From Rebecca billardiae RCC1528 (taxonomy: Eukaryota > Protista > Haptophyta), in contig OZ251225.1 in assembly GCA_965240325.2 (NCBI GenBank), positions 868,001 to 932,000 of the forward strand: a stretch of 64,000 nt of DNA, in the 5' to 3' direction. How positions within the stretch are numbered: the stretch's first letter is position 1; every line of letters begins with the position of its first letter. Below, one piece after another: positions 18,438-53,889 of this stretch. The notes under the pieces were generated by a model, which was not told where the DNA came from, did not search any database, and worked only from the letters and a program-made list of their open reading frames with translations. The position numbers were made by a program, and so were the translations under genes.

Positions 18438-21400
18438 TCAGAGTGTCACGCCTGCGCCCGGCAGAACGCTCGCCGCGACGTGATCAGCCTCCGCCCACGG
18501 GCGGCGCGGGTCGAAGCCGGGGACGGTGTGCACCGCCACCTCGCTCGCCGCGCCAGCGCTGCCGCCATCGTCGGCGGGCGGCGGCGACCGGGCGAGAGCG
18601 ACGAGCCTTTCGAAGACGCCGAGGTCGCGGTACGAGCGCAGCGAGAGCTGCAGCCGCATGAGCCGCTCCGCGTGCGTGACGACCGACTCGAAGAGGTCGT
18701 CGTCGATGATCAGGTCGACCACGGCCTCGGCGAAGGCCTGCGCGTCGGCGCGCGGCACGAGCTTGACCGCGGAGCACGCGTCGGGCATGCAGCGCAGCCC
18801 CGCCACCGTCGTCGTCACCACGGGCACGCGCGCCTCCATCCCGGCCACCACCTTGGTCGAGATGCCCGAGCCAACAAACTGGACCGGGTTGATGAGCACG
18901 CGCGAGCGCTCGAGGAGCTTCGCCAGCGCGTCCGGCTCGACCTGGCCGAAGCACTCGACGGCCTTGAGCGCCTGCGCGTCCGCGCGCGACTGCGCCTCGC
19001 TGAGCAGCTCGTGCACCTCCGACGTCCAGTTGCGCGTGACCAGCTTGCCGCCGCCGCCCGCCGCCATGTTGAGGAACTTGTACCCGCCGACGAGCGCGAC
19101 GTTGGCGCGCATCGGCCGCGGGAGCGCGCCCAGCCGCTGCGCGATCACGGGCAGCACCTTGGTGAGGAACCAGCGCACGTCCTTCTGGTTGGAGCGGTGC
19201 GGCGTGCCCACGAACGTGATCAGCTCGCGCTTCGCCAGCGCGTGCTTCCGCTTCACCGGGTCGAGCCGCGCGGGCGCGGGCGGCGCGTACGACGCGTACG
19301 GCACCGTCTCGACCGTGGGCATGGTCGCGTCGTCAGCATGGCCGCCGCGCAGCTGCATGTACTGGAACTCGTCCTGCTCGGAGACGGTGTACAGGTTGTC
19401 GATGTGCGGGTGCGAGGCGAGCCACGCCTCGAACGCGCGCACGCGCGCCACGCGCTCCGCCGTGTCGCCCACCGACTGGCGGCGCAGCCAGTGGACGTCA
19501 TCGGTCAGGATTGAGAGCGGCAGCCGGCGACCGCCGAGCGCGCGCGCGCCGACCACCGCGTCGATGGCGAGCAGCGGCAGCGGCGTGAGGCCGACGCGGT
19601 AGAACCAGAGCGAGGCGAACACGGCCTCGATGCCGTGCGCCACGATCCAGCTCGCGTTCAGCCCGGACAGCGCGTCGTCCATCGGGTGCCACGTCACGCG
19701 GTGCGCGTGACGCCGCAGCACGTCGCCGCCCGCCGCGTGCAGCTGCTTGATCGACGTCGAGCGGTACACAAAGTGCACCGAGGCGCGCAGCTGGTCGAGC
19801 AGGTAGTGCATGATGGAGAGCAGGCGCACATCGGAGCCCTCCGTCCCCGAGGGCAGCCGCTCGTACACCACGAGGAACGACGGCGCAGCCGCCGCGGCCG
19901 CCGCCTCCTCCGCGCGGCCGGCCGCTGCGCCGGCGCCGCCGTCCCGGCGCGGCCGGCTCGCGCATGAGTCGCGGAGGGCGTCGGCCTCGTCGCTCACCAT
20001 CATGGACGAGGCGAAGAGGCCCTCGGCGGCCGGGCCAAGGCAGCACTCGGGCGTCGCCGCGTCCACCGCCGACGAGCCCATCGCCGCCTCCACCTCGAGC
20101 ATGCCGCCATCCTCGCCGAAGCCCGAGAGGCGCGTGTCCTCCCTCGCGCGCGCGACCGCCGCGCAGCACTGGCCGTGCGCGAGCCCAAACTGCTCGAGCC
20201 AGCCGAGCGCGTGGCGCCAGTTGCGCGCCTCGTACGCTGTGCGCACGAGCGCACCCTGCTCGAAGGACGGGCGCTCGTCGTACCGCAGCGCCCAGTGCGT
20301 GTCGCGCACGATCTCCACCGGGCCGAGCGCGCGCAGTGCCGACAGGACCGCGCAGCCGTGCGGCGCGAGCGCCGCGGCCATGGAGCCCGACCCGGCGGCG
20401 GCCGAGGCGGCGCCCGCGTCCGCGAGGCGGCGCATGTACTCGGCGGGCATGACGAAGAGGTCGTGCTCGTCCACGGGGCCCTTCAGCGTGTGCCGCAGCA
20501 CGTACGTGTCCGCGCGGCCGCGCCCGAGCGCCAGGTCGGGCGTGGCGAGCGTGCGCGTGATCGAGAGGCCGAGCCGGTCGTGTGGCAGCGTGCGGTGCTG
20601 CACGTACGCAAACGCCGCGCGGTAAAACTCGGCGGAGAGCACGCAGTCCGCGGTGGAGAGCACCGCCCAGTTGCCCGAGACGTGCGGCGCCGCGGCGCGC
20701 CACACCGCGCGCGCGTCGGGCAGCAGGCCCTCGCCGAGGAACGAGTCCGGGACCGTGAGCAGGACATCGCCCTCCCCCAGCAGGCGGTGCGAGACGGGCG
20801 GCTGGCCGCCGGCCGCGCCGCCGCCGCCTCGGCCGCCGCCGTGGGCGGCGGTGGTGACGAGGACGAGCTTGACGATGATGCGCTCGTTGAGCGCGTGCGC
20901 CGCGGCACGGCGCCACGAGAGCAGCGCCGACGTCAGCGCCACCCGCGACGTGCCCAGCCCGTACGCCCGCGCCACCTCCTCTGCGTCCCAGAGCGTGACC
21001 ACGTGCGTCAGGTGCGCGTGCGCGGACGTGTCGTACCCCTGCGCGCGCAGCCAGCCGCCGTGGCGCGCGTCGACGCGGGCGAGGTCGGCCTCGAAGTCGC
21101 AGATGGGCAGCCTCCGCGGCGGCGCCACGCCGCTCACGCACGGCCGCTGCGAGCGGAACCACTTGCCCATCCCGTCCCGCTTGAAGACGCAGACCGCCTG
21201 GCCGGGCGCACACGTGCAGTTCACGCGCAGCCGGCCGTTGCCCGACTTGAGGTACGCGAGCACGCCCGCGCGGCGGAAGGCGCCGGGCGCGCGGGTGAAG
21301 GGGTGCGTGTGCGACTCGGAGAGCGCCGTCTTCGAGTCCCAGCGCAGCGCGGCGATCCCCTTCGTCGCGCTCGCGTTCCCACCCGCCGCTTCGACCCTCC

Positions 21401-22109
21401 GCTGCGCATCCGCCACCGCCTCCCTCACACGGCGCGTGGACGAGGCGAGCTCGTCGTCGAGCCGGCGGCGCACGGCGACGACGTCGACGTCCGCGCGGAG
21501 CGCACGCGCCAGCCTGCGCAGCTCGGCCAGCGGGTCCGCCGCCAGGTTGGCGTACGCCATCGAGTAGGCCGCGTGCGCCGCCCACTGCTCAAAGTGGCCA
21601 AACATCGACACGAGCGTGTGGTTGTTCACGTGGTTCATGGCGAAGGGCTGCGCGTCGTAGCACGCGCCAAACATGAGCGCAGTCGAGAGAAGGCAGTCGC
21701 GAAGGTCGCGGTGGCTCACCAGCACCATGTCCGCGCGCTCGAGCACAGCGCGGTCGAACTCGTGCAGCTTGACCACGCAGTGCTCCGCACCCTCGCACGA
21801 CTTGAGCAGTGCAGCGCCGTCGTGGCCGTGGGCCGTGGTGACGGGCTTGCCCGTCGCGGTCTCAAGAATGACGCGCACCGCGTTGAATTGCCAGGTCGAG
21901 CCCGAACGGATGAGGCCGGCACACACCACCAGCCGCGGTGGCGGGGCGGTTGCCACAGCCTGCCAGGCCCGCGCGGCCGCGCGACCGTCCGCGTTGGGGG
22001 CGCCCCCGTCGACGTCTGCTGGCCTGTAACGAGTCGCAATGAGCGCGAGCGCGCACACGACGATGAGCGCGCGGCTGTAACGGCCCGCAGCCTGGCTCCC
22101 GGCGCCCAT
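18438..22109 (-). CDS. Type II membrane sulfotransferase-glycosyltransferase fusion protein (1223 aa)
   Basis: N-terminal TM helix; PAPS-binding-like CAGLIRSGSTW and SHRDLRD; C-terminal GT-B/GT4-like FVGTPHRSNQKDVRWFL...GSGISTKVVAGMEARVPVVTT. Confidence 0.8.
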   Translation of the reverse strand: MGAGSQAAGRYSRALIVVCALALIATRYRPADVDGGAPNADGRAAARAWQAVATAPPPRLVVCAGLIRSGSTWQFNAVRVILETATGKPVTTAHGHDGAALLKSCEGAEHCVVKLHEFDRAVLERADMVLVSHRDLRDCLLSTALMFGACYDAQPFAMNHVNNHTLVSMFGHFEQWAAHAAYSMAYANLAADPLAELRRLARALRADVDVVAVRRRLDDELASSTRRVREAVADAQRRVEAAGGNASATKGIAALRWDSKTALSESHTHPFTRAPGAFRRAGVLAYLKSGNGRLRVNCTCAPGQAVCVFKRDGMGKWFRSQRPCVSGVAPPRRLPICDFEADLARVDARHGGWLRAQGYDTSAHAHLTHVVTLWDAEEVARAYGLGTSRVALTSALLSWRRAAAHALNERIIVKLVLVTTAAHGGGRGGGGAAGGQPPVSHRLLGEGDVLLTVPDSFLGEGLLPDARAVWRAAAPHVSGNWAVLSTADCVLSAEFYRAAFAYVQHRTLPHDRLGLSITRTLATPDLALGRGRADTYVLRHTLKGPVDEHDLFVMPAEYMRRLADAGAASAAAGSGSMAAALAPHGCAVLSALRALGPVEIVRDTHWALRYDERPSFEQGALVRTAYEARNWRHALGWLEQFGLAHGQCCAAVARAREDTRLSGFGEDGGMLEVEAAMGSSAVDAATPECCLGPAAEGLFASSMMVSDEADALRDSCASRPRRDGGAGAAAGRAEEAAAAAAAPSFLVVYERLPSGTEGSDVRLLSIMHYLLDQLRASVHFVYRSTSIKQLHAAGGDVLRRHAHRVTWHPMDDALSGLNASWIVAHGIEAVFASLWFYRVGLTPLPLLAIDAVVGARALGGRRLPLSILTDDVHWLRRQSVGDTAERVARVRAFEAWLASHPHIDNLYTVSEQDEFQYMQLRGGHADDATMPTVETVPYASYAPPAPARLDPVKRKHALAKRELITFVGTPHRSNQKDVRWFLTKVLPVIAQRLGALPRPMRANVALVGGYKFLNMAAGGGGKLVTRNWTSEVHELLSEAQSRADAQALKAVECFGQVEPDALAKLLERSRVLINPVQFVGSGISTKVVAGMEARVPVVTTTVAGLRCMPDACSAVKLVPRADAQAFAEAVVDLIIDDDLFESVVTHAERLMRLQLSLRSYRDLGVFERLVALARSPPPADDGGSAGAASEVAVHTVPGFDPRRPWAEADHVAASVLPGAGVTL

Positions 22110-23721: not shown

Positions 23722-25439
23722 TAGGGGGGCCAAAGTGGCACTGTAGCGTTACTGACGGCCACGAGCGCGGGTCCTAGCGAGTGTTTAGAGCTGATTTCGG
23801 GCTGGATCATTTGCCCTCTGGAGGGGTCTGGGCCGGCCATGTAAAAAAATCAGGTGCACATACCCTGAATATAGGGCGTAACGGCTAGCATATTTACTTA
23901 TTAGAATGAGCCTGAATTTATTGGAAACGGCATGTAACGGTCGTCCTATATGTGACATATAGACCATGTCGACCTCACTTTGTTAGAGCATCTCAGCGAG
24001 ATCGTTCTGAGTCCCCAGCAGCAGCAGGTCCCAACATGCGATATAGGCTGTGTACTGGCAGGCTGTCAAATATGTAGTTTCCTAGAAGCCACCGATCGTT
24101 ACATACCCACTGTGTATATAGACGCCATGCTGATGAATACAGCCTCATCTGATCTCGAGCTGCGAGATACGTTTTCAGACTGTGTATACGGCCACGCGTA
24201 CGGCGTATTGCAGACATATTAGACCCAAAGCACCGGCCCCACGTCCTCAGCCCGGGAGTGCTCTCGGTCATAGTCACGGTTTAAAGTCACTCGAGCCAAC
24301 CGTCACCGCTCCCTGGCCGAGACCTACGAGGCAGGTCAAATCTGTCGTCGTCGCAGTGCGGCACAGTGCCGAGCATGCGATTCGGCAGCAAACGTCTGCT
24401 CCAGGCGGTGGCTGGCGTGTCTGCACCAAACCAGGCTGGATGGGATTGGTCCACATAGGTACGCACTACCCTGTTCCGCGCTATTTCTGGGCTTAGGGGC
24501 GGATATTCGGCCTACAGAGGCTGATCCGGCGTTGTTCGGCGCTCCTGGCTGGCTGCGCGGAGCCCAACGGCAAGCGCCGGCGTGTGCAAGGTGTCAAGAT
24601 TGAGACGGTCTCTGACGCTCCCGCCGGTCTTGGGCGCACCAGGGTGCATGAGGGCCCATCTGCATCTGCTTCTGCAGGCATGAGCGTCACAGGGGCGCGC
24701 TTGCAGGCACGGTCGAGTGCACGTCGGACCTGTCGAATGAGCCAACCGCTGCCTGCGAGCACGTCCGCGACGTCCTGAGAGGCGAATGGGAGGCGCCCAG
24801 ACGCCATCAGAGGGCACACGTGACCCATACCCAACGTACTGACCATCGCAAGTGCCACGGCAGGTGCAAACACGGGCCCTACAAGCGGAACATGACAGTT
24901 GCAAGCTCCGCGGAGGTGCTGTGCGCGAGCTCGCGCCGGTCTGCTGACGGCGATTCCGGCGCAGTAGGGCAGGTTAGGCGAGCTGGGCATTCACAGACAT
25001 ACATGGACGATTGGTCCGAGCATCGATCTCATTGGTCCGAGTTGATCATGCGCCACACCGTGCGGTAGCGTAGCGGGCGTACGCAGCGCACCAATTCAAG
25101 CCGGCCGACGCGCGCCGCGCACGGCGCGAGGTGGCCAAGAAGCGGGTGGTGAGCCGCTGGTGGCGCAAAGGCACGGGTCAGTAGCGCCCACCAGCGTCAC
25201 GCGCGCGCGCACCCGAGACCATCTCGGCGTCTCAAAGGTCGCGAGCGCGCGGCGGTCCACTGCCTCCGGCCGCTCGTGCTGGAGCGGAACCGAGCTCTGA
25301 GCGCCCGAAGGCGTCGGAGCTCGATTTTCGAGCGAGGTCCGAGAAAAAGGCTCCGCGCCACCCTTAAAAGGCCGAGGGCGGAGCGAAAATGCGACGCGAC
25401 TTTGCTTTTCATTTTTAAATGGGCGGTTTGGCCCCCCTA
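23722..25439 (-). mobile_element. Non-autonomous TIR DNA transposon, copy 2 (1718 bp, uninterrupted)
   Basis: 13-bp TIR TAGGGGGGCCAAA...TTTGGCCCCCCTA and perfect 7-bp TSD GCATATG (23715-23721 and 25440-25446). No convincing ORF. Confidence 0.92.
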
Positions 25440-37923: not shown

Positions 37924-39253
37924 CTCGTGGAGGCTGCGCTCGCCCTGGCCCCTCGGAGCTCGCGTGAGGTACTTGTGTGTGCCGCTGCTGGCGAGCAGCT
38001 TGTGGTGAAGCTTCCATGGCGAGGCTTCCAGGATGTCACTCGATTCGTGAGTCGCGTGCTGGCGTGGGGAGGCAGGGAATCAGGGATGCAAGACGCCAAC
38101 GGTCACTAATTCACACACCTACTACCGGGCTCCTGTGGTCCACGCGGCACGCGAAGCTACGCGGTGTCCTACCGCCTCGCGGCGGCGCCATGCCGCCCTC
38201 TCTGATGACGCAGTTGCTTACGGTCGCGCTCCGCTGCGAGCGGGCGGCCATAATATGTATCCAATATCTGAGCCGCGCCGGCGGCGTTGTCCCGCGTTCC
38301 GCACGGTGACGGCCGCGGCCCGCGCAGCCCCGCAGCGGCCGGCGGTCGCCACCGGTCCTGCCTCCTGGGCCTGGCCGCTTGCGACCAAACGTGAACGGCC
38401 GACCGCCGGCAGCGGCGCCGCCGACCCTGGCGGAACGGCGCGCCGGGCCCCGCTGAGACTCTGAAGTCTGAGCAAGCTCTGAGCTACTCGGACCGCTGCG
38501 GGCCTGCGGCGGCGGGGCCGTGCCCGTGTTGCCCACCGAGTCCGAGTGGGCGTGATACTGGCGGAGCGGGAGTGGCAGTCGATGCCACGGCACGGGCTGC
38601 CACCAGCTGCTACCTACAGGTATGAGCGGCTGAGACTCAGACCGTGCCGCGCCACGCGGCTGACATCCGGACCGCTGCACTTTCGCCCTTGCTCCGGCCG
38701 GGCAACAGACAGCACGGGTCCGCATGCGAGCCACGCAGCGCCTCAGTCAGGTGCGGTCTGGTGGATCGCGCTTGGCAGCACAGGCTGCCTGGCTGGCAGC
38801 ACTACGGAGTCTCACACGCATCTCAGGAGACGGCGGCGGGCTCGGCGGGCTCGGCGGCGGGAACGGCTCCGCGCGTGGCGGCGGCGGCGGCTGGGGCGGT
38901 GGCGACGGGGCGGCGGCGCGGCTGGAGGCGGAGCGGGCGGCCAGGCGACAGTGGCGGCGGTGACGGCGACGGTGGCGGCGGTGACGGGGATGGCGGCCAC
39001 AGCCGCGCCGCTGACCGCTCGCGAGTCGTCGGCCGCGCGTGTCGACGATCAGGCAGATCGGGCACTGCCGCCGACGAATCAGGAGACCCGCGTCGTCCTA
39101 CATGTGGCATCGTTAACTGAGCATAGATCAGAATGAGACCTGAGTAACCAGGAGTGACTTGAGTCTTGACTCAGTCGGTACTCAGTGTGCGGACACACGA
39201 AAATACTGTACTAATATGCTGTTCGAACTGCTGTTTTGAACGTGTTGCGCACT

Positions 39254-39324
39254 GCGCCTTTGGTCTAGTGGTATGATGTTCGCCTCCCACGCGAACGACC
39301 CGAGTTCGATTCTCGGAGGGCGCA
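39254..39324 (+). tRNA. tRNA-Gly (anticodon CCC)
   Basis: Acceptor stem GCGCCTT/AGGGCGC, D-arm TGGTCTAGTGGTATGA, anticodon arm TTCGC-CTCCCAC-GCGAA, T-loop GTTCGATTC, and a T-rich 3' flank. Confidence 0.96.
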
Positions 39325-39676
39325 TTTCTTGCCATTTTGGAGAGATTTTATTGTAGCTAGCTTCTCGCATTGCGGCATCGGCACCATGGCACTCAGCGCA
39401 CTGCCCGGCCGGGCACGCAAACCAGGCGCGTGCGGGGGTGTCACGCGCGCGCCCCATGGTGGGCGGCGGATCAATCCTGGCGGAGTGCGCCGCACAGTCG
39501 CCCAGGGACCGATCCTGGGACCAGAGAGGGATGCACGTTCAATGCTCTTGTGACTGCCGTGCCCCTCCGCGTCGGACTGCGCCCCAGGCCCTGTCAGCCC
39601 TCGGGGCCCCAGCTCGTCGCAGCGGTCGCGCACACACCGTGATTGGGACCGCAGCGACCACAATAGGGGCAGCTCC

Positions 39677-40683: not shown

Positions 40684-41285
40684 ATGGACGCGTCTGCGGA
40701 GGAGGCGCTCGCGGCGCACCTGCTCGGCGCGCTGGGCGGCGAGCCAGCGGCGCGGCTGGCGCACGAGCGCGCGCTGCAGGCGGCGCAGGCGCAGCCCGGC
40801 GCGCTCGTCCCGCTCCTATCCGCCGCCTCGCGCGCCTCGCTCCCGCCGGACGCGCGGCTGCTCGCCGCGCTGTGCGCCAAGCACGCGATCGAGCAGCGCT
40901 GGTCGCCGCGCGGCGGCCACGCGGCCGGCGCGGCGGCCGCGCTCAGCCCCGAGGAGAAGGCGGCCGTGCGTTCGCGCCTGCTCGTCCTCGCCGTCGACGC
41001 GGGCGCCGACCCGCGCGTCGCCGCGCACGCCGCGCTCGCGCTCGCGCGGGTGTCGCGCACCGACGGCGCCGCCGCGGGCTTCCCCGAGCTGCTGCCTGCG
41101 CTGGTCGAGGCGTCGCGCCGCGCGGACGACGCGCAGAGCGTGCAGGGGCTGCGCGCGCTGCACCGCGTCGTGAAGGAGCTCGCCTCGCGCCGGCTGCTGC
41201 CGCACAAGCGCGAGCTGTGCTCGCTCGCGCCCGAGCTGTCCGCGGCCGTGCGCTCGCTCTGGGAGCGGCACGCGTCCGCGGCGCT

Positions 41286-41318
<33 letters not shown>

Positions 41319-43920
41319 TCGCGCGCTCGGGCTGGAGGGCGCGGCGCTGTGCGTCAAGGCGATGCGCCAGCTCCTCGTCCACGGCCACGTCTCGCTCCGC
41401 GCCTCCACCTCGGCGCACGCGGACGCGGCGCGCGAGCACGCTGACGCGCTCTCACGCTCGCTCGGCGCGCTCCCGCCGCTGCTGAGCGGCGAGGCGGAGG
41501 AGCGCGCGGCGGCGCTGGCGCGCGCGACGCTCAAGCTCGTGGCGGGGGTGCACGAGCGCCACGGCGCCGCCGCGCTCGGCGAGGCCGGCGCGGCCGCCGC
41601 CGTGCGCTTCGCGCACGGCGTGGTGGTGGGCAGCGGCGACGGAGCGGCGCTCGGGTGGGCGGGCGCGGCCGGCGCGCGCGCGGAGAGACTGTGGGCACGG
41701 TGCGCCACGCTGCTCGCGCGCGTGCTCGGCGCGCCGGACGACGAGGGCGGCGCGCCGAGCGCGGCCGCGCCCGACGCGCCGCCGCCGTGGGGCGCGCGCG
41801 CGCGCGCCGAGCTCGTCGCGAGCGGCGGCGTGGGCGCGCTCGCGCGCGCGCTCGTCACAACCGGGCTGCCGCTGCGCGCCGCCGACTGGGACGAATGGAC
41901 CGAGGAGCCCGAGGAGGTGGTGGGCGCGGAGCTCGCGGCGGCGGCGGCGGCGGCGGACGTCGCGGCCGCCGCGGCGAGCGGCGGCGCCGGCGCGCAGCTC
42001 GACGCGGCCTCCGTCGAGGCGCTCGCCGAGTCGCCCGCGCCGCGCGACGCGGCGCGATTCGGTCTGCTCGCGCTCGGCGGCGCGGCGGACGCGGGCGTGC
42101 GTGGCGCCGCGCAGGCGGCCGTGCTGGCGCTCGCCGAGGCGACGGCGGGCGCGACGGCGGGCGACGAGGGCGAGCACGCGAGCGTCGCGCGCGACGCCGC
42201 GCTCCACGGCGCGCTGCTCGCGCTCGCGCCGGACGCGCGCGCGGCTGACGCGCGGCTGCGCGCGCTGCGCGCGGCGGTGGGCGCGGCCGGCGCGGCGCGG
42301 CGAGGCGGCGCGCGGCGCGCGGCCGCGCTCGCGCGCATGCGCGGCGCGTGGGCCGCGACGATCGCGCTGGGCGGCGGCTGGCTCGGCGACGACGCGGATG
42401 GCGCGGACGCGCGCGCTACGCTCGAGCTCGTCGCCGCGCTCGTCGCCGACCCCGACGCCGCCGTCGCGCTCGCCGCGGTCGCGGCGGTGCGCGCATCTCT
42501 CGACTCGAGGGCGGCCGGCGGCGCCGCGGCCGCGGAGCGCGCGGCCGCGCTCAGCCGCGCGGCGCTGGAGCCGCTGCTGCGCGCGGCGGCGACGGGCGCC
42601 GACGCGGGCGGCCTCGCGCGCGCGGACGCGCGCTGGCGCGTGCTCGCCGTCCTGCCGCGCGCGCTCGAGGCGGCGTGCCCGCCCGGCGCGGCGGAGGCGA
42701 TCGGCGCGGGCGATGCGGCCGCGGCCGACGCGGCCGCGCCCGCGGCGCACGCGTGCGTGCGCGCGCTCGGCGCGCTCTGGGCTGCGGCGGCGAGCGAGCA
42801 GCTGCTGGCCGAGGCGACGGCGGACCTGGCGGCGAGCGCGCTGCGGCTGTGCGGGCCCGCCCTCGCGCACGCCGCCGTCGACGCCGCGACGCCGCTCATC
42901 GCCGCGTCGGTCCACGCCTCCGCCGGCGTCGGGCTCGTCGAGCGCGGCGTCGCGCTGTGGCTTGCCGCGCTGGCGTGTGCAGTGCGAGCGCCCGGCGGCG
43001 GCGCCGCGCTGCTGGGCGGCGGGCTGGGCGCGCTCGCGCCGCGCGCGCTGGCGCTCGCGGCCGAGTCGGCGGGCGAGGCGGAGCACGCGCGCGCCGCGTA
43101 CCACGTCCTCGGCTGGTACGTGCTGCTCGGCGGCTCGGCGGCGGTGAGCGCGCAGCTCGGCGACGCTGTCGCGCGCGCGCTCGCTGTCGCGGCCGACGCG
43201 GCGTCCGCGGGCGACGCGCGCGGGCGGCGCGGCGTGCTCGCCGCGCTCGAGCTCGCGGACGCGTGCCTCCGCGTCGCGCCCGACGCGGCGCCCGGCGCGC
43301 TCGCGCCCGCGCTGGCCGGCGCGCTGCGCGCACTCGCCGCCGCCGCCGCCGCGCCGCCGCGCGCAGGCGCGGACGAGCTCCTGCTCGGCGGGTGCGCGTG
43401 CGTCGCCGCGCGGCTGTGCTGGGCGCGGCCTGACGCGCTGGCCGAGCTGCTGGCGCGCGCGGGCGCGCCGCTCGAGGCGCTCGTGGACGGCTGGCTCGAG
43501 GCGGCCGAGTGCGTGGTCCTCGCGCGCGGCCGCGCGCTCTGCGCCGCCGCGCTGCTGCGCCTCGCCGTGCACACGGATGCGGCGCGCTCGCGCGCGCCGC
43601 CTGTCCTCGCGTACGCTGCCGGCGTCGTCTGCGACGCGCGCGCGCGCGACGCGCGGCCGGGCGGAGGCGGCGGCGGCGCGGCGGCGGCGCGCGCGGGCGG
43701 GCCGTTCGGCGCGGCGCTCGACGCGCGCGCGCCCGACGATCTCGGCAGCGGCGGGGCGGCCTCGCGCGCGCTGCGCGACGCGGTGGATGCGCTGGGCGGC
43801 GAGGCGGCGCTCGCGGCCCTCGAGCCCCACGTCGCGCAACAGCTGAGGCTCGCGCTCAGCGCGCCCGAGGTGGAGGCCGCGACGACGACTGCGACGCCGC
43901 AGGCAGGGGGCGCGCCGTGA
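40684..43920 (+). CDS. Importin-beta family HEAT protein (importin-11-like), extremely Ala-rich
   Basis: IBN_N-like RLLAALCAKHAIEQRW..EEKAAVRSRLL..ARVSRTD..FPELLPAL, ALHRVVKELASRRL and WDEWTEEPEE. Confidence 0.78.
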
Positions 43921-45110
43921 GGGTCACGCCGCACTAGACTCTACGGCCTCTCACACCTGGCCAGGCGTACGGTGACACTAGCGCGAGCTACTGCCACTGG
44001 CAGGCTGGCAGCAGCGCGCGTGCTGCGTCAGAGTCTGCGGTATTGTCATAGTCCGGTAGCCATTAATCATTATGCCTGCCAGGTCAAGGTGTCTATGACT
44101 ACTATGGTCATGGAGCGCTCCGGTTGGAACTTGAGCGGGGGTGGAACTTGACCCCACATTCTGAGCAAGCGCTCGCTTCGCGGTGCGGCAGGCCTTGGAT
44201 AGACCAGGCAGACATGTCGCGACCGCATTACCGGGCCATGCGCGCACCACATCGTCGACAAGCGCAGAGCGGGCGCGCGGGAGTTTGACCAACTCGTGTA
44301 CCTTCTTGCAAGCACCAGCGGCGATGTCGCAAGCCGAACCTTGACCAGCCGTGGAACTTGAGCTGGTCGGCAGCAAAACACCGCATGGCCCCGGATCAAG
44401 TTAGCAGCGTGCGAGGAGGAGGCACGGTGCGCGTCCGCGGCTGGCGAGAGGCGTCCGGATCGTGCCGTTCTCGGCCGCGCCCGCGCGCTTCCCGCCGCCA
44501 CGGGCCCCGTGTACGCCCGTCGTCGCCCTCGCCGCGTGGGCGCCAAACCGGGCTCAAGTTCCAACGAGCGCTCCATATTTATAATTCTGTGTAGACAATA
44601 GATGATGATAGGTAGGGTCAGGGTGAGCAATCTGAGAATCCTCGGAAGATTTGGTTGGTTCGGTTCAGAAAAAAAAACCCTTGGGAAACCCTGGCAAAAG
44701 CCTGAAACGCGGAAGATTGCTGTCCTCGAAGCACTGAACTTGGACATAGGACGTTGAGGCCAAGTTAAAAGCGCCTCGCTATATCTTGCGTGGAATCAGG
44801 CTCGCTCTCAGAGGATTCTGAGCGCTTTTATTGTGGGAAGGTTCGTCCGCCGACAGATCAAACGTGCGACCCGACCCTTGCAACACTCGTCCGGGACAGC
44901 TGGACCAAGCGGTGCAACGACAGTGCCGAGCCACCCTGAACGACCTCTTTGGCCACGAGACCTCCGCGGCGGCGATTCGTTCGCCGCGAGGTCGCCGAGG
45001 GAGAGTCGCCCACGGTTTGCGTGGCGAGCGAGCCCGACGCTGCGCACATCGAGTACGCCGACGCCGCGATCGTCGAGCGGCCCGCGAGCGAAGCGTCGGA
45101 GCTGACGCCG

Positions 45111-46154
45111 ATGCCGGAAGTGTCGGCACCTGCGCCCGCACCGGCCGTCTCGGTGGGCTCGCCTGCCGACGATGCGGCGCTAGCCGCGGGGGTCGCGGCA
45201 GCGCCCGCCACCTCGGATATCATCCCCATAGGTCCTCCAGCCGCGACGTCCCACTCCATCTCCACGCGCGACCCCGACACGGACGCCGGCTCCGAGCCGC
45301 GCGGCAGCACGCGCAAGTACGGCATCAAGTACAAGGGCGTGTACGCGTGCAAGGACTCGGGCGGCAAGTGCTGGCAGGCGCAGATTAGCATTCGCGGCTC
45401 AACGCACCACCTCGGCGTCTTCCACTCCGCCGAGGACGCGGCGCGCGCGTACGACGAGCAGGCGCGCGCACTGCAGCGCCAGCCCAACTTCCCGCTCGCC
45501 GAGGGCGAGGAGCCGCCGCCGCCGCCGCAGCCGCGCTCGGGGCGCAAGCGCAAGCTGCACGGCGTGGGCGCCGACGTGAGTCCGCCTGGCGTGGCCGAGC
45601 GAGGAGCGCTCGCGTGTGGCGCCCACGCCGCGGAGCAGGGGCCGCTCTGGGTGCGCCACCCCATTGACCAGCAGCAGCTCAGCGCCTTCTGGCACGGCAC
45701 GGGCGTCGCTGGCGCGGGCGCCGGCGCCGGCGCCGCGCCGCCCGCTCAGCCGCTCTCGCCGCACAAGTCGAGCAGCGTGGTGGTGTCATCGGCGGCCGCG
45801 CCGGCAAACGGTGCCCTGCCCATGTATGGCGGCATGATGCCCGCTGGGTACGCGCCAGCGCTCAACGCGCTGGCACAGCAGCAGCTCATGCTGCGCGCGC
45901 TCGCGCAAGGAGCAGCTTGCGCGCACGCCGGCGGCGCCTCGGCGGGTCAGAACAGCCCGCGCGAAAGCGCCACAGCGCGTAGTGGCGTCAGCGGCCCAGC
46001 GCCCGTGAGTGCATCCGCCGCGCCAACCGATGGCGCGGCAGCGCTACTCATGGCCGCGGCATACGCCAGGGAGCACCAGGCCCTCTCGGCGGGCCCGTGC
46101 CCACCGGCCGTCATGGGGCACGCGGCGGCGCCGACTCCGAGCCACTTGGCGTGA
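45111..46154 (+). CDS. AP2/ERF-domain transcription factor, paralogue 1 (start uncertain)
   Basis: KYKGVYACKDSGGKCWQAQISIRGSTHHLGVFHSAEDAARAYDEQAR..PNFP. Confidence 0.85.
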   Translation: MPEVSAPAPAPAVSVGSPADDAALAAGVAAAPATSDIIPIGPPAATSHSISTRDPDTDAGSEPRGSTRKYGIKYKGVYACKDSGGKCWQAQISIRGSTHHLGVFHSAEDAARAYDEQARALQRQPNFPLAEGEEPPPPPQPRSGRKRKLHGVGADVSPPGVAERGALACGAHAAEQGPLWVRHPIDQQQLSAFWHGTGVAGAGAGAGAAPPAQPLSPHKSSSVVVSSAAAPANGALPMYGGMMPAGYAPALNALAQQQLMLRALAQGAACAHAGGASAGQNSPRESATARSGVSGPAPVSASAAPTDGAAALLMAAAYAREHQALSAGPCPPAVMGHAAAPTPSHLA

Positions 46155-47042
46155 CCCTAGCTACGCGCGACCGAGGGCTCGTGAGGCGTGCCGGCGTGAC
46201 GCTGTCGACGGGCTCATGGTGAACATTCGGCGCAGCCGCCAGCCGGCGCGGCGGAGCCTGCCGTGCTCGGGATCGGCCGACGAGCACCACGCCATTGCGC
46301 CGGTGCGTTCAACTTCGACTTGGCCAACAGAACGTTCACGTTGTCCAAACGGACGTGGTCTGACTAACAGCTGCGTGATCCGCGCCGCACCGCCTCCGCA
46401 GCCGGGAGCCGTCGCGCCGTCGGGCCTGACTTGGCTGCCCGGTGCCCCGGGCGCGGCCCGAGTGAGTGCCCGAGTCGCCTCGCAGCTCGCCCTGCCGCCT
46501 GCGGCCTGGTGCCTCGGTGACGGTCCGGCGTCATCGCGGTCAGCGGCACTCCGAGGAGTCAGGGTGAGGGTCCGGCACGGCGGGCCACGGACACTCGCAG
46601 GCGGCACTGCTGATTGGAGTTCCGTGCGGGCCGCGCGGTGCCGGCTGCCGCGCGCGGCACGGCTATCTCCACCGCCGCCAACTAGCGGCCGGCAAGACTG
46701 CACGTCACATGATGCTCAAAGCTTGAAACACTTCAGGCGACGGATGGACCAAGGACCCCAGTTTCTCCCGGGTAACAATTCCTCTAACTATTACTCACCC
46801 CCGTCGCGCCCGTGAAAAGTGTTACGGGCCGAGCGTAGCAGTAACATGTAACACTCTCACGCCGGACTCACGCCCGGACTGCGGGTGTCTGACCGAGCCG
46901 CACTCGCCGCCCGTGACTAAACGCCCTGGCTGAGCACACTGTCAGCCATCGTTTTCACTTGAGACCGTCGGTGGCGTCGGTCTCGGATTCTCGCGGCCCG
47001 TTGCCGGCCAGTCCGGGTCCGGGTCCGGGGCCGGGCGGGTGG

Positions 47043-47437
47043 CGTAACACGTAACAAGTCCGGCGCGGCGAGTCCGGGAGCCGACCGGTCCAGGTCCGGG
47101 GCGGGCGGGCCGCCCGGGCCGGGCCCGGGAGGAGGCCCCCTGTAACAGCTGTAACACCGTAACACGTAACACAATGGCGCCGCTCGGCCGCGGCCCGTCG
47201 GCCCGGTGAAAAAATGGCGGCGGGGCGCGCGGCGCGCAGCGTCGCGCTCGGTGCGCTCGGCGGGGCTCGAGGAACGACTGCGGACGGGCGAGCGCGCACG
47301 GGCGCGAGCACGAGTCGCGTCGCCCGCGCCCCTCCCCGAGCGACCTGCCGCCGCGTCTCGCGACGATGGCGCAGTGGCCGCTCGTCCGTGGCCGCGTGAA
47401 AAAATGGCGGCGGGGCGCGCGGCGCGCAGCGTCGCGC
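47043..47437. repeat. Left arm of ~395-bp inverted repeat (right arm 48920-49312)
   Basis: Near-identical reverse complement. Each arm holds two TGAAAAAATGGCGGCGGGGCGCGCGGCGCGCAGCGTCGCGC boxes 190 bp apart plus TGTTAC/GTAACA clusters. Confidence 0.92.
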
Positions 47438-48657
47438 GCCCAGGCGAGGCGTGCACGCACGAGGTTGTGTTCCTGGCAAGTGGCTCGCAGCGTACGTTCG
47501 GCGGCCGGCTGCACGTGCCGAGCAGCCGCCTGCGCGAGCTCGATGCACTCGTGGCCGCGCAGCACTTGGTGCACGGCGCGCGCGCGCCCATGGTGGTCGA
47601 GGCGCTCGGCGCGCGCGCGCGCTTCGTCGTCGATGTGGACTGCGCCTTCAGCACCGCGCCCTCCCCCTCGGACGTGGCCGCACTGCTCGTCGGCCTCTAC
47701 CGCGTCGCGGAGGAGCATCTGCCCGTGCCCGTTCCCGTGGCTGGGCGCGTCGTGTACGTCTCGGCGCGCGCGCCCAGCCCCGCGACCGCCGCCGGCTCGG
47801 CGCCGGGCGTGCGCCGAGCCGGGATTCACGCGACATGGAACGACTCGGCCATCGTCTCGGCCGCTGAGGCGGCGCGCATCGCGCGCGTCCTGCTCGACTG
47901 GGCGCGCTCGCAGCCGCGGCCGCCGTGCTGGCACAAGCTCGAGATCGACTGCAGCATCTACGGGGCGGGCCTGCGCCTGCCGTTCACGGCCAAGTCGGAC
48001 GGCGGCCCGCCCTACCTGCCGGCAGCCGTCGTCGCCGCCGACGAGCACGGCGCCGTGCGCTGCGCGTGGCTCGACGCGCTGCCTGCGCAGCACGCGCTGC
48101 GGCGGCTCGCGGCGGATGGCGCGCGCTGGCTCTCTCGCGCGCGGCTGCGCACCGAGCTGGTCGAGTGGAGCGCGCCGCCGCCCGCGCCCGGCCGACCGGC
48201 TGTGCCGGCGACGAGCGCCGCCGGTCGCGATGCGGCGGCCGGCGCGCGGCGCGCGGCGCTGGTCGGCTGGCTCAACGAGCAGCTGCACGCGCACGCACGA
48301 GTCTCTGGCTCGGCCGAGCGCTGGCCGCGCATCGTGCAGGTGTTTGCTGGGAGCACGGCGCACGGCCCGGTCGCGACGTGCTCGACCGCCAGCAGGTGGT
48401 GCGAGTGCAAGGGCGCCGAGCACGCGCGACGCACCGTCTTCTACTTCGCCAAGTCCGACGGCCTCGACCTGTGCTGCGCCGACGAGGCGTGCGTGCCAGC
48501 GCGCGGCGCCGGGTACGCGCGCGCCGTCTGCCTGCGCAGCATGCTCTTCTGCGCGGGCGGCGGCCGCACGGGCGCGCCGCCCCGCATCGCCGAGTTTGCC
48601 TCGCGCTTCCACGCCGCGTTCGCCAGCGGCCGTGCCGCGATGGGCCCGGCGCGTTGA
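47404..48657 (+). CDS. AEP-superfamily primase-polymerase (NCLDV A468R-like/PrimPol-type) with C-terminal Zn finger, 417 aa, intronless
   Basis: Motif I RFVVDVD, motif II GIHATW, motif III IDCSIY followed by GLRLPFTAK..PYLP, and C-H-C-C Zn ribbon SRWCECKGAEH...LCCADEAC. The N-terminal TH..GGRLHVP..VVE pattern recalls phycodnavirus primases. Confidence 0.82.
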   Translation: MAAGRAARSVARPGEACTHEVVFLASGSQRTFGGRLHVPSSRLRELDALVAAQHLVHGARAPMVVEALGARARFVVDVDCAFSTAPSPSDVAALLVGLYRVAEEHLPVPVPVAGRVVYVSARAPSPATAAGSAPGVRRAGIHATWNDSAIVSAAEAARIARVLLDWARSQPRPPCWHKLEIDCSIYGAGLRLPFTAKSDGGPPYLPAAVVAADEHGAVRCAWLDALPAQHALRRLAADGARWLSRARLRTELVEWSAPPPAPGRPAVPATSAAGRDAAAGARRAALVGWLNEQLHAHARVSGSAERWPRIVQVFAGSTAHGPVATCSTASRWCECKGAEHARRTVFYFAKSDGLDLCCADEACVPARGAGYARAVCLRSMLFCAGGGRTGAPPRIAEFASRFHAAFASGRAAMGPAR

Positions 48658-48919
48658 CGACGCGGCGGCCGTGCAGCGCGCATGCGCCCGCGCGCCGTCG
48701 CCGTCGCCGCCGCCGCCGCCCCGCCGCCGCCGCCGCCGCCGCCGCGCCCACCTCGCGCCGTCGGCCGACGGGCTCGGCAAACGAGGCGGCGTGCAAACAA
48801 GGACTCGGCGCTCGCGCCGGGGTCGGTGCGGCGCGACGCCACGCGAACCGCCGCGGTGCTCGCGCCCGTGCGCGCTCGCCCGTCCGCGGGCGCTCCTCGA
48901 GCCCCGCCGAGCGCACCGA

Positions 48920-49312
48920 GCGCGACGCTGCGCGCCGCGCGCCCCGCCGCCATTTTTTCACGCGGCCACGGACGAGCGTCCACACCGCCATCGTCGCGAG
49001 ACGCGGCGGCAGGTCGCTCGGGGAGGGGCGCGGGCGACGCGACTCGTGCTCGCGCCCGTGCGCGCTCGCCCGTCCGCGGGCGTTCCTCGAGCCCCGCCGA
49101 GCGCACCGAGCGCGACGCTGCGCGCCGCGCGCCCCGCCGCCATTTTTTCACCGGGCCGACGACGGGCCATGGCCGAGCGGCGCCATTGTGTTACGTGTTA
49201 CGGTGTTACAGCTGTAACAGGGGGGCCTCCTCCCGGGCCCGGCGGCCCGCCCGCCCCGGACCTGGACCGGTCGGCTCCCGGACTCGCCGCGCCGGACTTG
49301 TTACGTGTTACG
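48920..49312. repeat. Right arm of ~395-bp inverted repeat
   Basis: Reverse complement of 47043-47437; the 190-bp periodic unit extends further inward to ~48855. Confidence 0.92.
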
Positions 49313-50425
49313 GTGTTACAGCTGTTACAGGGGGCCTCCTCCCGGGCCCGGCGGCCCGCCCGCCCCGGCCCCGGACCGGCCGGCTCCCGGACTCTGCGCC
49401 GCGCCGGACTTGTTACGTGTTACGGCCGTGTTACAGCTGTTACAGGGGGCCGCTCCTCCCGCGGGCCCGGCCGCGGCCGGCCCGCCGGCAGCCCCGGACT
49501 CGGACCGGAGCCGGACTTGTTACGTGTTACGGTGTTACAGCTGTTACAGGGGGCCTCTGACTGGCTCCTCCCGGGCCGCGAGGCCCGGGCCCGCCGGCAG
49601 CCCCGGACCCGGATGACGCGCCGGAGTTGTTACGTGTTACGGTGTAGTACAGCTGTTACAGGGGGCCTCCCGTCCCGGGCCCGGCGCGGCCGGCCCGCCG
49701 GCAGCCCCGGACTCCGGGACGAGCCGGACTTGTTACGTGTTACGGTGTTACAGCTGTTACAGGGGGCCTCCTCCCGGGCCGCGAGGCCCGGGCCCGCCGG
49801 CAGCCCCGGACCCGGACGCGCCGGACTTGTTACGTGTTACGGTGTTACAGGCAATACAGCTGTTGACAGGGGGCCTCCTCCCGGGCCCGGCGCGGCCGCC
49901 CGGCCGGCCCGCCGGCAGCCCCGGACTCCGGGACGAGCCGGACTTGTTACGTGTTACGGTGTTACAGCTGTTCAACAGGGGGCCTCCTCCCGGGCCGCGA
50001 GGCCCGGGCCCGCCGGCAGCCCCGGACCCGGACGCGCCGGACTTGTTACGTGTTACGGTGTTACAGCTGTTACCGAGCCTGGGGCCTCCTCCCGGGCCCG
50101 GCGCGGCCGGCCCGCCGGCAGCCCCGGACTCCGGGACGAGCCGGACTTGTTACGTGTTACGGTGTTACAGCTGTTACAGGGGGCCTCCTCCCGGGCCGCG
50201 AGGCCCGGGCCCGCCGGCAGCCCCGGACCCGGACGCGCCGGACTTGTTACGTGTTACGGTGTTACAGCTGTTACAGGGGGCCTCCTCCCGCCCCCGGGCC
50301 CGGCGCGGCCCGGCCCGCCGGCAGCCCCGGACCGTCCGGGACGAGCCGGACTTGTTACGTGTTACGGTGTTACAGCTGTTACAGGGGGCCTCCTCCCGGG
50401 CCGCGAGGCCCGGGCCCGCCGGCCC
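49189..50425. repeat. Tandem array of 12 units of ~97-117 bp, each with four TGTTAC boxes (some degenerate)
   Basis: CCGGACTTGTTACGTGTTACGGTGTTACAGCTGTTACAGGGGGCCTCCTCCCGGGCC at ~49189, 49292, 49404, 49511, 49621, 49724, 49821, 49938, 50037, 50141, 50237 and 50346. Confidence 0.95.
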
Positions 50426-51282
50426 AGGAGTGCCGCCGCGGACCGACCGCGCCGCTGACTCAGGACGCCGACGGCGTCACGGCGGCGATGCGGCGCGCCG
50501 CCGCGCGGCCGCCGCCGCGCGCGCGCGCCTGACGCGCGCGCTGTCGAGCCGCAGTCCCTCGCGTGCCTGCGCTGGCGGGTGACCGGGGTGTTACCATCGC
50601 TACGGCCGACAGGGCCAAAAATCCCTATAGAAAACATTTCCCCTATGAAGGTAATATGGGTAGCAGAAACTCGGGTCCATACCCGACGGATGCGCAAGCC
50701 GCGCCCGGGCTGCCTGGGCAGTGAATGTGATGAGTGAACATTGGCGCAGGGCCGCAGGCGGTACTCGGTATGATAGTCCGGAGCTTCATACCTTACCCCC
50801 ATATTGCGGATGCGTTTCTGCTAACATGATGATGCATGATTGTAGTCTGGATACTTGATGATTGAAAGTACGTACTTTCATCATAGAATCACTCCAGTGC
50901 TTCCATGGGTGTTGCAAAATAATTCGCATCATTGATGACTTGCTGTTCGATTATTTTGTTTCACAAGCCGGGCGTTCGCTCGCTAGAGTCTATGATAGAG
51001 CTCGGTGTTGGAGTACCCCATAAACATTTAGCTCGGCGTTTGGAGATTCAGGCTCTCGGACTTATCACTCGTCTGAATCCAAGTCAGATATGAATCTCAA
51101 CCGCCAAGGTTGAGATCTGGTGGAGGTGTACGCCGTCCGGAGGAGCGGAGACGGCAGAAAAACGCAAGGACGACGAGACTCTGACGAGGCCAGACGTGGA
51201 ATCGTGGATACGTGCAACCCCCCGGCAGGCGGCCGGGTGGAAACGCGAAGGTGGAACCAGGGGCATCAACGCGGAGCGCGCA

Positions 51283-52431
51283 ATGCTCGCGGCTGCCCCA
51301 GCAGGCGCGAGCCCAGCGGCCGCGGCGCCGCGCTCGGGGGGGCACCCGTGCGCTGAATCGCTCGCGCACACGCGGGAGGCCTCGCCCGCCGGCAGCAGCG
51401 ACGCTCAGAAGGGCCCTGCCCTTGCTGCCCCGGGGGGGACAGTCAACCCGGCGAGCGGGCGGCGGCGCAAGTACGACATCAAGTACAAGGGCGTGTACGC
51501 GTGCAAGGTGTCCGGCGGGAACTACTGGCAGGCACAAATATCGGTCAATGGCACGACCCACCATCTCGGCGTCTTTGCCACCGCCGTCGAGGCCGCGCGC
51601 GCGTATGACGAGCAGGCGCGAATGCTTGGCCGGCGCCTCAACTTTGACACGCCCGCGGAGGCGGAGGCGGCGCTCGCGAGCGCAGGCGTGGGTGCGCGCA
51701 CCACCTCCACTGGGTCAGGAGGCGCTGGCGCTGCCGCCGTCGCCGCCGCCGCCGCCGCCGCCGCCGCGCGCGCCGCCGCCGCCGCCGACGGCGGCGCTTC
51801 TGCGAGCGCGGGGCCAGCTATGGCCTTCTGGTACCCGACACCGGGGCCACTCGCGCAGCCGCCGGTGAGGGCGCACGTGATCGCCGGGCCAGGCATGCCG
51901 CAGCACGCGCAGCCCTTTGGCGCGCGGCCGCAGCCAGTGCTGCCAGGACATCGGCGGGGCGCACACTCGCTGGACCAGCGGCTGCAGCCGCGCCAAGCGA
52001 TGGACGAGGCCCGGGACGACGCGCCGACAGCGCCGCCGACGCTGGCGCACGGCTTCGCCGCGCACCCGTCGTTGCATTCCGCCGCGCACGCAGGCCCCGT
52101 GCCGATGGACGAGGACGCCGTCCTCAACGCGCTCGCAGCGCATGCCGCTGAGAGCCAAGCGCAGGCAGGGGCACTCAGCCCGCCCGCGCACAGCGTCGAT
52201 GCTGAAGCGGGCGCGCGCTGGGTCGGCGTGCCGCTCAAGGCGCAGGAGCTCGCGGCCTTCTGGCAGGGCACGGGCGCGGCGCCGTTCAACCCGGCGCTCG
52301 CGATCATGTCCTCGAGCGGCGAAGAGGAGGGCGTGGCTGGTGGCACCGGCGTCCCCAGCCTCCCCGCCGCCGGGCCGATCTGGGACGCCCTGCGGAGGTG
52401 CGCCACCGAGCCCTCGGACGGCTCCCTCTGA
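51283..52431 (+). CDS. AP2/ERF-domain transcription factor, paralogue 2 (start uncertain)
   Basis: KYKGVYACKVSGGNYWQAQISVNGTTHHLGVFATAVEAARAYDEQAR..LNF. Confidence 0.85.
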   Translation: MLAAAPAGASPAAAAPRSGGHPCAESLAHTREASPAGSSDAQKGPALAAPGGTVNPASGRRRKYDIKYKGVYACKVSGGNYWQAQISVNGTTHHLGVFATAVEAARAYDEQARMLGRRLNFDTPAEAEAALASAGVGARTTSTGSGGAGAAAVAAAAAAAAARAAAAADGGASASAGPAMAFWYPTPGPLAQPPVRAHVIAGPGMPQHAQPFGARPQPVLPGHRRGAHSLDQRLQPRQAMDEARDDAPTAPPTLAHGFAAHPSLHSAAHAGPVPMDEDAVLNALAAHAAESQAQAGALSPPAHSVDAEAGARWVGVPLKAQELAAFWQGTGAAPFNPALAIMSSSGEEEGVAGGTGVPSLPAAGPIWDALRRCATEPSDGSL

Positions 52432-53720: not shown

Positions 53721-53889
53721 CCCTGGCTGAACGGGAAGAGCGACTGAGCCGACGGTGCCAAAGCTGCGCGCAGACTGCGCCAGCGTGTGGCAGCAAGGTC
53801 CCCCTGGCTGAACGGGAAGAGCGACTGAGCCGACGGTGCCAAAGCTGCGCGCAGACTGCGCCAGCGTGTGGCAGCAAGGTCCCTGGCTC
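53721..53889. repeat. ~81-bp tandem duplication (2.1 copies)
   Basis: CCCTGGCTGAACGGGAAGAGCGACTGAGCC...GGCAGCAAGGTC is repeated exactly. Confidence 0.9.

Follow-up and report, generated by a model that had tools for sequence, protein, structure and literature searches.

Pack-Mutator-like elements (Pack-MULEs), which enclose foreign coding sequence between terminal inverted repeats (TIRs) without a transposase, usually carry host-gene fragments, and transpovirons and virophages, at 7-40 kb, hold several genes (capsid, packaging ATPase, helicase, polymerase or integrase). Polinton-like viruses have a size within that 7-40 kb range (PMC12220804). Among the Mutator/Foldback elements, Tm1 combines 9-bp target-site duplications (TSDs), asymmetric outermost motifs and arms of variable tandem repeats, and it has non-autonomous members with an unrelated gene (PMC3169594); multiple transposase-binding sites are reported in the long arms of Galileo (PMC3688188). 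Teratorn consists of an entire herpesvirus joined to a piggyBac-like element, with its own transposase and ~90 other predicted genes (PMC6431247), and IEE of E. coli is a PrimPol-based insertion-sequence (IS) excision enhancer that acts on IS elements from outside (bioRxiv 10.1101/2023.06.07.543989). In our literature searches, primases of eukaryotic mobile elements were found only within large virus-like elements (Teratorn, polinton-like viruses), and no account was found of a small eukaryotic DNA transposon (TIR element) with a replication primase as its only gene. Here we describe a candidate for such an element, a 3,937-bp unit at positions 46747-50683 of a 64-kb stretch of contig OZ251225.1 from Rebecca billardiae RCC1528 (the whole stretch of DNA that we analyzed, hereafter the window).

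We judge it probable, though by no means certain, that this unit is a non-autonomous cut-and-paste transposon of the Foldback/Mutator-like type, and that its sole cargo is an intact, host-adapted primase-polymerase derived from a giant virus (nucleocytoplasmic large DNA virus, NCLDV). The evidence for mobility is structural only. An earlier note on this DNA, made from the sequence alone, had described an exact 9-bp duplication flanking a 3937-bp segment between two AP2 paralogues, as well as short imperfect TIRs, and our analysis bears out both descriptions. The 9-mer, CGACGGATG, has the length typical of a Mutator/Foldback TSD (9 bp, range 8-11), and the identity of its two copies stops at 9 bp on both sides. 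Inward of these copies, by 6 nt on the left and 5 nt on the right, sits an inverted core, GGACCCNAGTTTCT, which matches at 13/14 positions and occurs in the window at these two places only, 46753-46766 (+) and 50665-50678 (-). The insertion is placed in the AT-richer spacer that separates two AP2-like open reading frames (ORFs), 44949-46154 and 51196-52431, and these are indeed paralogues (73% identity, a 63-residue AP2-like stretch, E 2e-28). When each flank was compared on its own with the paralogous spacers of the window, nothing resembling an empty-site copy was found.

As a check on chance we counted the 9-mer direct-repeat pairs that lie 0.5-10 kb apart in the window. There are 21,612 of them, 79 of which also have an inverted match of at least 13/14 just inside; nearly all of those 79 consist of GC/TA low-complexity sequence or fall inside the repeats of the primase element itself. 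For a 9-mer with an inverted core located no more than 500 nt from each side of the repeat structure, we arrive at a rough chance estimate of ~1e-3. Because chance configurations do exist, and because the estimate is of this order, we rate the boundary evidence as good, though short of overwhelming. Independent support for the boundaries is given by the span of the hexamer TGTTAC, which is specific to the element: it extends to 26 nt from the left end and to 95 nt from the right end, with none of the span beyond those ends.

The hexamer and its complement occur 56 times in the 3.9-kb element, as against once in the remaining 60 kb of the window, and their orientation is mirrored, with 9 of the 10 in the left half reading GTAACA and 45 of the 46 in the right half reading TGTTAC. 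They belong to a composite repeat structure. The two arms of a 395-nt inverted repeat (47043-47437 and 48920-49312) are 98% identical and agree in 381 of 399 columns, each arm being made up of an array unit with a four-hexamer cluster, a short spacer and copies of a 190-nt unit (1.25 copies on the left, ~1.6 on the right). In the left arm, ~1.25 array units with GTAACA clusters (47043-47171) are followed by a 28-nt spacer and by 1.25 190-nt units (47200-47437), and GTGAAAAAATGG is present in each copy of the 190-nt unit. Analysis of the tandem array with TRF gave a period of 104 nt, 11.5 copies and a 203/417-nt higher order; the array has twelve cluster starts, with up to four TGTTAC per unit at a spacing of 7-9 nt. 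Its extent differs between the two sides, from ~1.25 inverted units on the left, inside the inverted repeat, to ~12 on the right. The repeat comparison and TRF thus agree with the previous description of ~395-bp inverted repeats around one intronless ORF and of a 12-unit TGTTAC array. No pieces of the element were found elsewhere in the window, save for CCG-type low complexity, and there was no Rfam match in the element region.

A few smaller features of the repeats and of the sequence outside them were also observed. The innermost right array unit contains a perfect 16-nt palindrome (TGTTAC-AGCT-GTAACA, 49204-49219) at a place where the other units have a direct repeat. The left subterminal region fades into array-like sequence from ~46990, and each subterminal region holds a palindrome with a 7-bp stem, at 46961-46984 on the left and at 50464-50478 on the right. 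The coordinates of all features are collected in Table 1.

Table 1. Features of the primase-bearing unit and of the two genes beside it, in window coordinates.
Feature	Position	Strand	Basis or remarks
AP2-like ORF, left neighbor outside the element	44949..46154	+	Paralogue comparison; Pfam AP2 match
Left TSD candidate, 9 bp, CGACGGATG	46738..46746	.	Just two exact copies in the 64-kb window
Left terminus	46747..46766	+	14-nt inverted core at 46753-46766; first 6 nt unlike the right end
Left subterminal region	46767..47042	.	No counterpart at the right end; outer edge less GC-rich; four scattered hexamers
Left arm of the 395-nt inverted repeat	47043..47437	+	Repeat comparison
Sole gene, 417-codon intronless ORF, small AEP primase-polymerase (activity predicted)	47404..48657	+	Coding statistics, motifs, profile and fold matches
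Spacer 3' of the ORF	48658..48855	.	CCG triplet run at 48688-48748
Right-hand inverted copies	48856..49312	-	~1.6 190-nt units (48856-49161) and the first array unit
Tandem array	49189..50423	+	Unit ~104 nt, 11.5-12 copies, two-unit higher order
Right subterminal region	50424..50663	.	Unrelated to the left one; one hexamer at 50589; outer edge AT-richer
Right terminus	50664..50683	-	14-nt inverted core at 50665-50678
Right TSD candidate, 9 bp, CGACGGATG	50684..50692	.	Second of the two exact window copies
Paralogous AP2-like ORF, right neighbor outside the element	51196..52431	+	Paralogue comparison

In its architecture the element resembles the Mutator/Foldback elements, among them FB of Drosophila and the root-knot nematode element Tm1 (PMC3169594). 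Like these, it has a 9-bp TSD, and its outermost bases are asymmetric and give way to a matching core; its inverted arms are composites of tandem repeats, in unequal numbers on the two sides, and an unrelated gene lies between them, as in the non-autonomous members. It differs from them in the start of its arms, ~300 nt inside each terminus, in its repeat unit, which is ~104 nt long with four hexamers rather than 13-15 nt, and in that it has no known MULE or Phantom-type transposase partner and carries a complete virus-type primase. The likeness to Pack-MULEs extends to the absence of a transposase from a TIR element that encloses foreign coding sequence; here, however, the cargo is full-length and intact, it starts inside the repeat of the element, and no host parent gene was found.

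The only gene that we recognize in the element is an intronless ORF of 417 codons. The first 34 nt of this ORF, including the ATG, belong to the left arm and its 190-nt repeat. The GC content of third codon positions (GC3) is 0.92, compared with 0.93-0.95 in the kinesin, importin and glycosyltransferase ORFs of the window, and the codon usage of the primase is host-like. Three-base coding periodicity in the element is restricted to ~47.46-48.63 kb. A Pfam scan of the 10 other ORFs of the element, including those of 1,030 and 612 codons, identified no domain and no transposase, in line with the reported lack of a transposase. We rejected the long ORFs at 47366-50458 (+) and 46942-48780 (-) as artefacts of GC-rich sequence because they have neither coding periodicity nor domains.

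The 190-nt units also contain a 12-nt motif, GTG(G)A5-6TGG, one in each of the four copies (at 47206, 47396, 48961 and 49151) and nowhere else in the window. The start codon of the ORF lies in the left-arm copy at 47396. The motif occurs once beside a diverged, 5'-truncated copy of the primase that was recovered in three samples (L002:344, L003:78, L012:498), in the orientation opposite to the gene. A role as a leader or promoter element common to both loci is possible. That the start codon falls within the 190-nt unit, and that the A-run motif is present at one diverged relative locus, hints, if weakly, that the gene and the repeats travelled together.

Assignment of the protein to a family was indirect. 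Direct searches with the ORF in Pfam, NCBIfam, PHROGs and the PDB sequences returned nothing usable, an exact-product look-up of the protein found no record, and in two of the word-indexed protein searches Ala/Arg-rich low-complexity words swamped the query and left scarcely any matches. A phmmer scan of 1.84 billion representatives, run without a length filter, so that fragments and fusions were also visible, found just 6 related clusters. Two of the relatives, P0005 and P0006, exceed the Pfam cut-off for PF23162 (AEP_C962R), the N-terminal archaeo-eukaryotic primase (AEP) domain of C962R of African swine fever virus (ASFV), and P0006 additionally touches PF03121 (Herpes_UL52), the UL52 finger. 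When the profile of the clade that includes the window ORF was compared by hhalign with that of the P0006 clade, the two were linked at 98.4% probability (E 8e-15) over 309 columns covering both domains. Membership of the PF23162 family is by transitivity only, because the ORF misses PF23162 itself and reaches it through its relatives and this profile link.

The key residues of the protein are D77, D79, H142 and D182, together with a zinc finger, C333-H340-C358-C363, with the spacing C-x6-H-x17-C-x4-C. Their conservation was taken from an alignment of 15 sequences. In motif I, the columns of D77 and D79 hold D in 12/12 covering sequences; the H142 column of motif II holds H in 12/13; the D182 column of motif III holds D in 14/14 and is followed by an invariant R191; and the four zinc-ligand columns are conserved in 13-15 of the covering sequences. 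An AlphaFold model made with the 15 sequences reaches a per-residue confidence (pLDDT) of 70-90 across the AEP domain; beyond ~residue 225 its quality is poor, and the zinc-finger region is of low confidence. Queried with this model, Foldseek returned 45 PDB matches at E<=1e-3 (best E 4.5e-6), and the top 50 PDB entries were all chains of ASFV PrimPol or of UL52 from herpes simplex virus 1 (HSV-1). Template-modelling (TM) scores, normalised to the isolated ASFV Prim/Pol domain, were 0.52-0.60. An earlier, weaker model had led to the same PDB families, and to NCLDV primases in BFVD. No cellular PrimPol was present among the sequence matches or among the top-50 fold matches.

These data support the prediction that the ORF encodes a small stand-alone AEP with a UL52-type C-H-C-C zinc finger and no helicase, its activity being predicted. 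They likewise support a grouping of the protein with the AEPs of NCLDV and herpesvirus type, as opposed to a widely conserved cellular gene. The earlier note had read DxD, sxH and hD motifs and a C-H-C-C finger in the translation and had placed the protein in the NCLDV-herpesvirus/PrimPol clade. The motifs correspond to conserved columns, and the clade agrees with the PF23162 relatives, the profile link and the ASFV and HSV-1 fold matches; because these lines of evidence agree, we consider that reading supported. In domain order, length (~350-450 aa), fold, catalytic DxD, H and D residues and C-H-C-C ligands, the protein is like the small stand-alone primases of NCLDV, represented by the P0006/P0016 clade and by the N-terminal domain of ASFV PrimPol. 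It is unlike them in that identity is only ~20-30% and the Pfam PF23162 model is missed, in lacking the helicase part of ASFV C962R, and in its location, which is a transposon-like unit in a cellular chromosome and not a viral replication-gene neighborhood.

The relatives themselves fall into two sets. The contigs of P0006 and P0016 carry genes for a capping enzyme, NUDIX, TFIIS, Rpb10, XRN and PCNA, and the P0006 clade is viral. More distant members were found on IMG/VR contigs, among them giant-virus metagenome-assembled genomes (GVMAG), and the genomes of two green algae, Tetrabaena socialis and Edaphochlamys debaryana, also contain copies, which have the appearance of endogenous viral DNA; the locus of the Edaphochlamys homologue (L014) has no repeat arms. 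Two giant-virus-like metagenomic contigs (L006 and L016) share a neighborhood of capping enzyme, NUDIX and small AEP primase, which suggests a conserved block of replication and transcription genes in that virus group. Two IMG/VR contigs with distant primase relatives (L017 and L022) have 70-73% GC, one of them being 127 kb long, and could belong to giant viruses rich in GC or be viral DNA endogenised in hosts of high GC content.

The clade of the window ORF itself comprises P0001-P0005 and P0007, at 31-57% identity, and all of these relatives are on short contigs (1.2-2.6 kb, 70-73% GC). P0001 is one intact member. We characterized the broken relatives by counts and outer bounds. L002, L003 and L012, from three samples but apparently one locus, retain only the C-terminal half of the primase after a 5' deletion; L004 matches the primase in three reading frames and so has at least two frameshifts; and L005 matches it in two frames and so has at least one. 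Sequence in Logan run ERR14847148 exactly encodes two of the host proteins of the window, and L004 and L005 come from the neighboring runs ERR14847149 and ERR14847151; the source organism or its close kin therefore probably hold several diverged and partly decayed copies of the primase. Divergence and decay of this kind are more in keeping with a gene that is selfish or endogenised than with a host gene under conservation.

Searches for the element outside the window gave little. Protein-pattern scans with the window clade in viral, metagenome and prokaryote contigs found nothing, and exact scans for hexamer clusters yielded no match in viral or prokaryote contigs and only four, all unrelated, among metagenome contigs. 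The DNA similarity of the non-coding parts of the element to the contigs of the relatives was not over background, and TRF found only short, weak repeats on those contigs. Two of them have features that we record here. L005 begins in repeats (positions 1-140), with a 26-nt motif present twice, 111 nt apart, enclosing four 9-nt repeats, and this cluster lies ~450 nt upstream of the frameshifted primase copy; its layout recalls the array unit of the window, with a sequence similarity that is not over the GC-rich background. In L012, AT-rich flanks (1-300 and 1530-1620) surround a GC-rich island that holds the truncated primase copy, and they resemble the AT-richer spacers around the window insertion.

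Under the transposon reading, a transposase encoded elsewhere in the genome would bind the TGTTAC clusters, which are candidate binding sites, and pair the ends of the element; the same trans-supplied transposase would cut at the termini and integrate the element through a 9-bp staggered cut. The 190-nt repeat would provide the gene with its leader and start codon, and the downstream inverted copy could have arisen by inverted duplication of the 5' region of the gene, followed by expansion of the array on the right. The primase, which would be of giant-virus ancestry and long resident in GC-rich genomes, might assist in DNA synthesis linked to the element (priming in gap repair or copying), or it might be a tolerated passenger. 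This is close to one of the two proposals previously made for the locus, a Foldback-MULE that captured a giant-virus primase: the architecture, the 9-bp TSD and the virus type of the AEP stand, while the capture itself is unproven.

Several points weigh against this reading. One copy is known, in one 64-kb window; no empty site, differently flanked copy or transposase partner was found in the collections searched, which did not include the host genome, and nothing indicates that the element moved more than once. We found in the window no autonomous partner with the same ends and a MULE-type DDE transposase. The two termini match over a short stretch only (13/14), and their outermost 5-6 nt are dissimilar; configurations of a 9-mer with an inverted match are not rare by chance in a window this rich in GC; and a 9-bp duplication alone is insufficient to name a superfamily. 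Some ~280-300 nt of unrelated sequence lies between each terminus and the repeat arms, whereas the repeats of classical Foldback elements run nearly to the ends and the arms here start ~300 nt inside. Finally, the ORF has no Pfam or PDB sequence match of its own, and its family is assigned through transitive and fold evidence.

Three other explanations were weighed against the transposon reading. The primase could be the core gene of the element, and the unit an integrated small selfish replicon or a satellite dependent on a giant virus, in which the hexamer arrays would be origin-like iterons, the long inverted repeat would form hairpin or fold-back ends, the primase-polymerase would start copying and integration would occur in trans. 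The ORF is intact and has lost none of its catalytic residues or zinc ligands, its start codon lies inside the repeated 190-nt unit, the A-run motif is common to the 190-nt units and the L002/L003/L012 locus, the relatives are on short contigs that end in repeats, and L005 starts with its four 9-nt repeats between copies of the 26-nt motif upstream of the primase, all of which would suit such a replicon. Yet the Pfam scan found no helicase, polymerase, integrase or capsid gene among the element ORFs, a 9-bp staggered cut is beyond an AEP, and the element repeats were on no extrachromosomal or viral contig that was scanned; moreover, the similarity of L005 to the window array is within the GC-rich background, the relatives are mostly truncated or frameshifted, and the codon usage is fully host-like. 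We regard this explanation as unlikely, and the more specific proposal of the earlier note, a linear or hairpin replicon that primes its own DNA synthesis, found nothing in its support. It is correspondingly improbable that the locus represents an undescribed family of eukaryotic mobile elements with a giant-virus-type primase-polymerase as its core gene between repeat arms and iteron-like hexamer arrays of its own, self-priming, possibly giant-virus-dependent and served by an integrase or transposase in trans.

The unit might instead be the endogenised remnant of a giant virus or another virus, reshaped locally by inverted duplication and array expansion, with the 9-mer and core coincidental. 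The nearest annotated kin are NCLDV genes and green-algal copies resembling endogenous viral DNA, the degraded copies on related GC-rich contigs would suit decaying insertions, and chance pairs of 9-mer and inverted match do occur in the window; against this stand the absence of other viral genes in the 64 kb, where the neighbors identified by Pfam are cellular, and the precision with which the 9-mer and core bracket the element-specific hexamer span (the rough chance given above). Such a remnant, too, we hold to have little probability. We consider it very unlikely that the ORF is a normal gene of the host, surrounded by local repeats by chance and coding for a PrimPol-like repair primase, either lineage-specific or domesticated. 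Host-like GC3, an intact ORF and intact homologues such as P0001 would be expected of one, but the family is extremely sparse (its 6 clusters in the phmmer scan), it has 5'-truncated and frameshifted members, cellular PrimPol is absent among the sequence and top-50 fold matches, and the repeat structure with its mirrored hexamers is unlike that of a normal gene. The combination that would mark a cellular PrimPol orthologue (broad vertical distribution, an intact gene and closest relationship to cellular PrimPol) is not what we found.

Comparison with the virus-linked elements leads away from them as well. Like Teratorn, the element has a transposon framework with a virus-type primase gene; unlike Teratorn, it measures 3.9 kb, contains a single gene and lacks a transposase. 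The transpovirons, polinton-like viruses and virophages are also small; they have inverted terminal repeats, are associated with giant viruses and can integrate, but at 3.9 kb, with one coding region, with other ORFs that have no Pfam match and with none of the capsid, packaging ATPase, helicase, polymerase or integrase genes of those elements, the present unit is not a polinton, polinton-like virus, virophage or transpoviron. In IEE there is a precedent for a primase-polymerase in transposon DNA transactions, as an AEP-family protein tied functionally to transposable elements; IEE is bacterial, its sequence relation to the window ORF is not established, and we use it as an analogy only.

What can be documented at present is one well-formed insertion whose cargo is unusual. 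Should the architecture recur in the host genome, the element would illustrate in compact form how genes pass from giant viruses into the transposons of their hosts, and it would serve to test whether a primase-polymerase can benefit a transposon in the way that bacterial IEE benefits insertion sequences. If the primase is instead the core gene, a primase-based type would join the self-synthesising mobile elements, alongside polintons and casposons.

The setting of the element is that of a cellular chromosome. The window has a GC content of ~68% overall and is eukaryotic and poor in introns, with the kinesin and the importin each encoded in one ORF of ~1,140 codons. Those neighbors that Pfam could identify are of the usual cellular kinds (AP2-like, importin, kinesin, ankyrin and glycosyltransferase), and no viral genes besides the primase were identified among them within the 64 kb. 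The Pfam AP2 match of the left neighboring ORF is weak (E 0.0067, under the gathering score).

Elsewhere in the window, a second pair of inverted-repeat arms, ~1.6 kb long and 96-100% complementary (14605-16205 and 23727-25309), encloses ~7.5 kb with the glycosyltransferase ORF (18438-22109, minus strand); these arms have no TGTTAC clusters and are unrelated to the primase element. The region of the importin-like ORF (41000-44000) reaches a GC content of 83-85%, far over the window mean. There is also a perfect 81-nt tandem duplication at 53721-53883 and a tRNA-Gly(CCC) gene at 39253-39325.

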